Source of the DNA: Hypanus sabinus
Taxonomy: Eukaryota
Assembly: GCF_030144855.1 (NCBI RefSeq)
Contig: NC_082731.1
Coordinates: forward strand, 23,622,001-23,686,000
Reading direction: 5' to 3'
DNA: 64,000 bases
The translations under genes and the position numbers were made by a program. Under the pieces are notes generated by a model that worked only from the letters and a program-made list of their open reading frames with translations, searched no databases and was not told the origin of the DNA. Every line of letters begins with the position of its first letter. Position 1 is the stretch's first letter. Below, one piece after another: positions 17,063 through 17,356 of this stretch.

Positions 17063-17356
17063 CTGCACGCCATTTGTACACAGCTTGACAGTAATAGGTG
17101 CCGCTGTCTGTCACTTGTGGATCTCGAATTTCCAACGAAAACTGCATTTCTGTTTTCTTAATTAAAATAGCAAATCTGCCTCCGCGAGTGACTTCTTTCC
17201 GTTCGGCCGCTGAGGTGGCCCGACTGAAGAATTTTCCTGTCTGAAAGCGATATTCACCATCTGAACCACGTTGGAAACTGCAGGTGATGGTGGCAGTTTG
17301 ACACTCATTCACGTTTACAATGGTCGGGTTCTGAGTCACCGACTGACTCAATGAAC
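17063..17356 (-). CDS. VNAR-like V exon 1 (NAR-TCR V), open frame
   Basis: Acceptor TTTCCAG|GT. Translation SLSQSVTQNPTIVNVNECQTATITCSFQRGSDGEYRFQTGKFFSRATSAAERKEVTRGGRFAILIKKTEMQFSLEIRDPQVTDSGTYYCQAVYKWRAA. Canonical Cys only 64 aa apart (VNAR-like C'-C'' deletion); GGRF..FSL.I.D...DSGTYYC motifs; followed by an RSS. Confidence 0.9.

Follow-up and report, generated by a model that had tools for sequence, protein, structure and literature searches.

A divergent NAR-TcRV segment from Hypanus sabinus carries the phenylalanine of its family at the core tryptophan site

Organization of the two cassettes

The window analysed here, a 64,000-nucleotide stretch of the Hypanus sabinus genome (NCBI RefSeq assembly GCF_030144855.1, contig NC_082731.1, forward-strand positions 23,622,001 to 23,686,000), contains two cassettes of V-type segments on the minus strand, which lie 31.5 kb apart and are alignable over their entire length. 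In cassette 1, the leader exon (17495-17537; leader, D, J and RSSs were read directly from the letters) starts with an ATG at 17537-17535, comprises 43 nucleotides that encode a hydrophobic leader, and ends at a phase-1 donor GT (17494-17493). A phase-1 GT/AG intron of 138 bases leads to the NAR-TcRV V exon at 17063-17356, which is open throughout, has its acceptor AG (17358-17357) immediately 5' of it and abuts a heptamer at its other end; the range in which the preliminary description had placed this V segment is therefore exact. The 23-RSS of the V exon (17024-17062) consists of the heptamer CACAATG (17062-17056), a 23-base spacer and the nonamer CAAAAACTG (17032-17024).

The encoded domain begins with SQSVTQ and contains a cysteine in the a-b loop (within NEC, 17303-17301), Cys23 (17282-17280), the motif TGKFFSR and Cys104 (17090-17088). 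Within the motif, the first Phe (17231-17229) replaces Trp41 and a second Phe follows at 17228-17226. The domain matches Pfam V-set (E 3.6e-10), its best PDB sequence matches are VNARs (8hgi_C, E 3e-12), and the NAR-TcRV domain of Pristis matches with an E value of 1.5e-29; the V-domain signal of 17356-17063 is far beyond chance. A word-index homologue search with the 98-residue V returned one candidate and no significant hit, which reflects the word index and its length window, and an Rfam scan of the whole window gave no matches.

The remainder of cassette 1 includes a single NAR D at 16627-16677 (coding part 16670-16655), which has the 5' heptamer TACTGTG and a 3' 12-RSS made up of CACAGTG, a 12-base spacer and ACAAAAAAA; and a NAR J at 16184-16282 (coding part 16243-16186), whose 23-RSS has its nonamer at 16282-16274 and its heptamer, CACTGTG, at 16250-16244. 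The RSS layout of the unit is V-23, 12-D-12 and 23-J, and these signals are mutually compatible. The coding end of the J reads ...LDGTGTTVTVRP (...DGTGTTVTVRP) and is followed by a phase-1 splice donor GT at 16185-16184. Behind the J lies a supporting V-delta (14262-14573, minus strand) that matches Pfam V-set and has no leader: its acceptor AG is at 14573-14572, its exon at 14571-14269 and its heptamer, CACTGTG, at 14268-14262. The phase of this acceptor is the same as that of the NAR J donor. The supporting V-delta has an extra cysteine in CDR1 (YDVYC) and its own RSS at its end. A second RSS-like signal is present on the minus strand within 14170-14268, with CACAGTG from 14207, a 22-base spacer and ACAAAAACT, some 55 bases beyond the heptamer adjoining the supporting V. 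The window has two runs of N, at 15144-15401 (in the cassette 1 intron between the NAR J and the supporting V) and at 42962-43275, and no TCR-delta constant exon lies within its 64,000 nucleotides.

Cassette 2 repeats this arrangement in a damaged form. Its leader exon is at 49007-49049 and its NAR-TcRV V exon at 48568-48861, both on the minus strand; the V frame is open, reads TGKFFCR with the Phe at the Trp41 position at 48736-48734, and is followed by a 23-RSS (48529-48567) composed of CACAATG, a 23-base spacer and GAAAAACTT. The a-b-loop cysteine of this copy occurs within NDC, and the domain has three cysteines more than copy 1 (GAC, FFC and KWC). The V acceptor, however, is CG in place of AG (48863-48862), no alternative in-frame acceptor was found when one was looked for near the V exon, and the first Tyr of YYC is changed (SYC). 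The supporting V-delta of this cassette (46068-46362, minus strand) is a pseudogene: its Trp41 codon is TAG (46258-46256), its frame is shifted near 46148-46139, and its end is not followed by an RSS heptamer. Cassette 2 (46068-49049) is a pseudogene.

Phenylalanine at the Trp41 site in the NAR-TcRV family

When 1.84 billion representatives were searched exhaustively with HMMER, 162 matches were obtained. The top-scoring single domains are NAR-V domains in RefSeq/UniProt gene models from ten chondrichthyan species: Pristis pectinata, Heterodontus francisci, Hemiscyllium ocellatum, Chiloscyllium plagiosum, C. punctatum, Scyliorhinus canicula, Rhincodon typus, Cetorhinus maximus, Mustelus asterias and Callorhinchus milii. 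In several of these gene models the NAR-TcRV domain is followed by a J-like stretch and then by a supporting V-delta with a cysteine in CDR1; the Mustelus P0010 model extends into a C-terminal sequence that, by reading it, we take to be a TCR-delta constant region. In alignment A1, the two copies of the window are aligned with 15 comparison domains (from sawfish, elephant shark and eight species of shark), which makes 17 rows of NAR-TcRV type; the other rows are two VNARs, four V domains of TCR-alpha and P0084, a Callorhinchus domain.

In this alignment, the first Phe of both window copies falls in the Trp41 column of the VNARs and TCR-alpha V domains. None of the 17 NAR-TcRV-type rows has Trp in the column, which holds F in 15, L in one and V in one; when only the 15 comparison domains are counted, the figures are 13, one and one. 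The a-b-loop cysteine, in turn, is found in all 17. Trp together with no a-b cysteine is the combination in all remaining rows (VNARs, TCR-alpha V domains and P0084). A start resembling SQSV(T/V)Q occurs in every one of the 13 comparison rows that include the N-terminus, and CDR1 is variable, and often longer, across NAR-TcRV domains.

In their work on elephant shark, Venkatesh et al. (2007; PMC1845163) state that the canonical Trp of 'WYRK' is absent from NAR-TcRV, both in nurse shark and in elephant shark. To judge from the aligned domains, the whole NAR-TcRV family has Phe at Trp41 as its ancestral, conserved state; the residue is neither a sign of decay nor the marker of a new subfamily. 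The domain P0084 of Callorhinchus milii (UniRef A0A4W3IEN3) stands apart: the back half of its V is close to the elephant-shark NAR-TcRV P0021, and its front half has WYRQYPGE, no a-b cysteine and a partly longer C' region. It may represent a V type of intermediate character, or else the gene model may be chimeric.

The descriptive part of the preliminary account agrees well with these comparisons. It had seen a NAR-type V with a short C'-C'' region, and the Cys-Cys distance is indeed 64 in the cassette 1 NAR V, as compared to 71 in the conventional V at 14503-14288, with a gap of eight columns relative to TCR-alpha V at C'-C'' in A1; the VNAR fold matches described below point the same way. 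The motif it had written as TGKFF[S/C]R is what the two copies contain, the QSVTQ N-terminus is present, and the CDR1 it had put at about three residues longer exceeds that of the two aligned VNARs by three residues. Its argument that the change from Trp to Phe is a family trait, and not decay, is borne out by the absence of Trp from all NAR-TcRV-type rows, with the caveat that the second paralogue on which it drew belongs to a decayed cassette.

A maximum-likelihood tree, the kind of check the preliminary description had proposed, joins the two window copies with support of 100/99 and places them as sister to the Pristis NAR-TcRV (98/96), a placement that fits a batoid genome. Both copies and Pristis belong to an elasmobranch NAR clade (95/97), of which the VNARs are also members, and the Callorhinchus domains and TCR-alpha V lie outside it.

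The preliminary description had gone further and suggested that the change from Trp to Phe, the longer CDR1 and the QSVTQ start may define an undescribed NAR-V subfamily. Some divergence is real: the nearest sequence in the databases, that of the Pristis pectinata NAR V domain (XP_051882926.1, P0004), is 52% identical to the window V, the other 14 NAR-TcRV-type rows are 28-45% identical, and position 43, directly after F-F, is S or C in the window copies but K or R in the relatives, whose motif is usually G-x-F-F-[K/R] (Pristis has FQTGQFFKR and the window FQTGKFFSR). However, every one of the traits that would define the subfamily, as well as the a-b-loop cysteine, is common to the NAR-TcRV known from the comparison species (sawfish, eight sharks and the elephant shark), the loss of Trp is in print (PMC1845163), and the window copies nest beside Pristis within the NAR clade. 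Since known NAR-TcRV genes in ten species carry the motif and the absence of the Trp has been published, the proposal fails, and we regard an undescribed subfamily as highly improbable. The window NAR V is a typical yet divergent member of the NAR-TcRV family, and the trait for which it had been flagged is a published hallmark of that family.

Likeness to VNARs and to conventional V domains

An AlphaFold model of the window NAR V, built on A1, has a mean pLDDT of 90.7 and places Phe41 in the middle of a strand (residues 34-45); a structure prediction had also been among the suggested checks. From the alignment and this modelled strand position, we infer that the Phe fills the core site of Trp41. 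Among PDB fold matches, VNARs account for 49 of the 50 best, with TM scores of 0.75-0.85. The likeness to VNARs (PDB 8hgi_C, 2ywy and 2i24) includes the same fold (TM 0.8-0.85), the truncated C'-C'' region and a shared back half, GGR[FY]...FSL.I.DL...DSGTY.C.

Because VNARs are the best solved-structure matches by both sequence and fold, a true VNAR from an IgNAR heavy-chain cluster is an obvious candidate identity for the segment, but the details speak so consistently against it that we give this reading almost no credence. VNARs keep Trp41 (WY[RF]), lack the a-b-loop cysteine and have a CDR1 three residues shorter in A1, whereas the window NAR V has Phe in place of the Trp of WYRK and carries the cysteine. 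VNARs are secreted within a heavy-chain dimer. IgNAR clusters have two to three D segments each (PMC3149040) together with C exons, as opposed to the one D found here, and the NAR J of the window is followed by a leaderless V-delta, with no constant exons there. In addition, the identity of the window V to VNARs is 30-33%, compared to 41-52% for most NAR-TcRV.

Conventional TCR alpha/delta V segments have in common with the window NAR V the V-set domain, the 23-RSS on the V and the location in a TCR alpha/delta region, but differ in having a full C'-C'' region (eight more columns) and Trp41 and in lacking the a-b cysteine; their domains pair with a partner V. The possibility that 17063-17356 is a decayed conventional V was also weighed and rejected.

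The agreement with NAR-TcRV, on the other hand, extends to the whole gene. The leader, the short C'-C'' region, the a-b-loop cysteine, the F-F motif, the SQSVTQ start and an own D and J are all found in the window cassette, and in cassette 1 the J donor faces a supporting V-delta that lacks a leader and carries a cysteine in CDR1. A leader, a NAR V, one D, a J with its donor and a leaderless V-delta together correspond to the published NAR-TCR cassette architecture, in which a NAR V-D-J unit is carried on a leaderless supporting TCR-delta V and each of the two rearranges separately (PMC1845163, PMC12227049, PMC6795676). The delta-V associated with the NAR unit has been described as leaderless and as having a conserved CDR1 cysteine (Venkatesh et al. 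2007, PMC1845163). Taken as a whole, 17356-17063 is very probably the V exon of a germline NAR-TcRV segment, the VNAR-like tip domain of the doubly rearranging NAR-TCR delta chain in cartilaginous fish. A NAR-TCR delta chain with NAR-TcRV was reportedly described in nurse shark by Criscitiello, Saltis and Flajnik in 2006.

In terms of significance, these divergent ray-type germline copies join a family known since 2006 and have little consequence beyond annotation. The comparison does confirm, over ten species from chimaera to ray, that the core Trp41 is replaced by Phe and that the a-b-loop cysteine is invariant.

State of cassette 1 and the predicted delta chain

The two NAR V copies are 71% identical at the protein level by tblastn and 70% in A1. 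At the DNA level, identity between the cassettes is 85% in the V exon, 80% in the leader, 79% in the J region and 74% in the D region, and 64-70% in introns and intergenic flanks (64-66% in those of the leader). The higher identity of the exons (79-85%) over the flanks suggests that the exons were constrained, or homogenised, after the duplication. The dN/dS ratio of the NAR V pair is 0.66 (dN 0.155, dS 0.233), which is weak evidence of constraint on the NAR V; such weak constraint is not unusual among V genes.

These figures bear on the view that the entire locus is a decaying relic, with both cassettes reduced to pseudogenes and the open V frames left over without a current function. Cassette 2 fits such a view, with its missing V acceptor, its lost first Tyr in YYC and a supporting V that is interrupted by a stop and a frameshift and lacks an RSS, and so do the dN/dS of 0.66, the Ser that occupies Trp41 of the cassette 1 supporting V, and the lack of RNA: the public-run searches brought up no RNA run that contains the window NAR V, and the word shares of the matching runs were only 0.06-0.19. 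Cassette 1, in contrast, retains its ATG, both splice sites, an open V frame, both canonical cysteines, the a-b cysteine, usable RSSs, the D, the J and the donor. The exons are also better conserved than the flanks, and the Phe is family-wide, hence not decay. Finally, related copies have Trp in the supporting V, so that an allele private to this copy or an error in the assembly may account for the Ser. On balance, a relic is an unlikely explanation, and the cassette 1 NAR copy, as far as its signals can be read, looks usable.

If cassette 1 is indeed a working NAR-TcRV cassette, RAG would join the NAR V (23-RSS), the single D (12/12) and the J (23-RSS) to one another, and the supporting V-delta would be rearranged separately to TCR-delta D, J and C segments. 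Transcription would start from the NAR leader, and the phase-1 donor behind the NAR J would be spliced onto the leaderless supporting V-delta exon. The predicted product is a three-domain delta chain with a membrane-distal, unpaired NAR V at its tip, as in the NAR-TCR, where the tip V of a three-domain delta chain is unpaired (PMC6795676). The a-b-loop cysteine of the NAR V and the CDR1 cysteine of the supporting V may form an inter-domain disulfide of the kind proposed earlier (PMC1845163). We infer these steps of rearrangement, splicing, expression and disulfide formation for cassette 1 from the published model (PMC1845163, PMC12227049, PMC6795676).

In the supporting V of cassette 1, in contrast to the closest known NAR-TcRV genes, the domain's own Trp41 codon is TCG (Ser; 14467-14465, minus strand, in the context LHSYRQ). 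In four DNA-like public runs, all contigs that cover 14467-14465 restore TGG (plus-strand 14466 G to C). The contigs of these runs are 90-97% alike and span introns as well as exons, so that they have no bearing on transcription, and the joints listed for them are single short-sided contigs; they are DNA of related copies or individuals. Their TGG indicates that the Ser is private to the cassette 1 copy or to the assembly; a mutation private to this copy, an allele or an error in the assembly could each explain it. With the Ser at this position, cassette 1 may not give a stable chain. Alternatively, the Ser could be both real and tolerated, which would leave both stacked V domains without a core Trp; we consider this quite improbable. 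If it were true, the NAR-TCR stack, perhaps by means of the inter-domain disulfide, would loosen a near-universal constraint on V domains. A weaker form of this idea would treat batoid NAR-TcRV, which carry S or C behind F-F and share only 52% identity with sawfish, as a functionally distinct lineage. The supporting V of Scyliorhinus canicula XP_038643991.1 (P0013) likewise has Ser at Trp41 (VHSYRQ) and has lost both canonical cysteines; this gene model is probably an annotated pseudogene.
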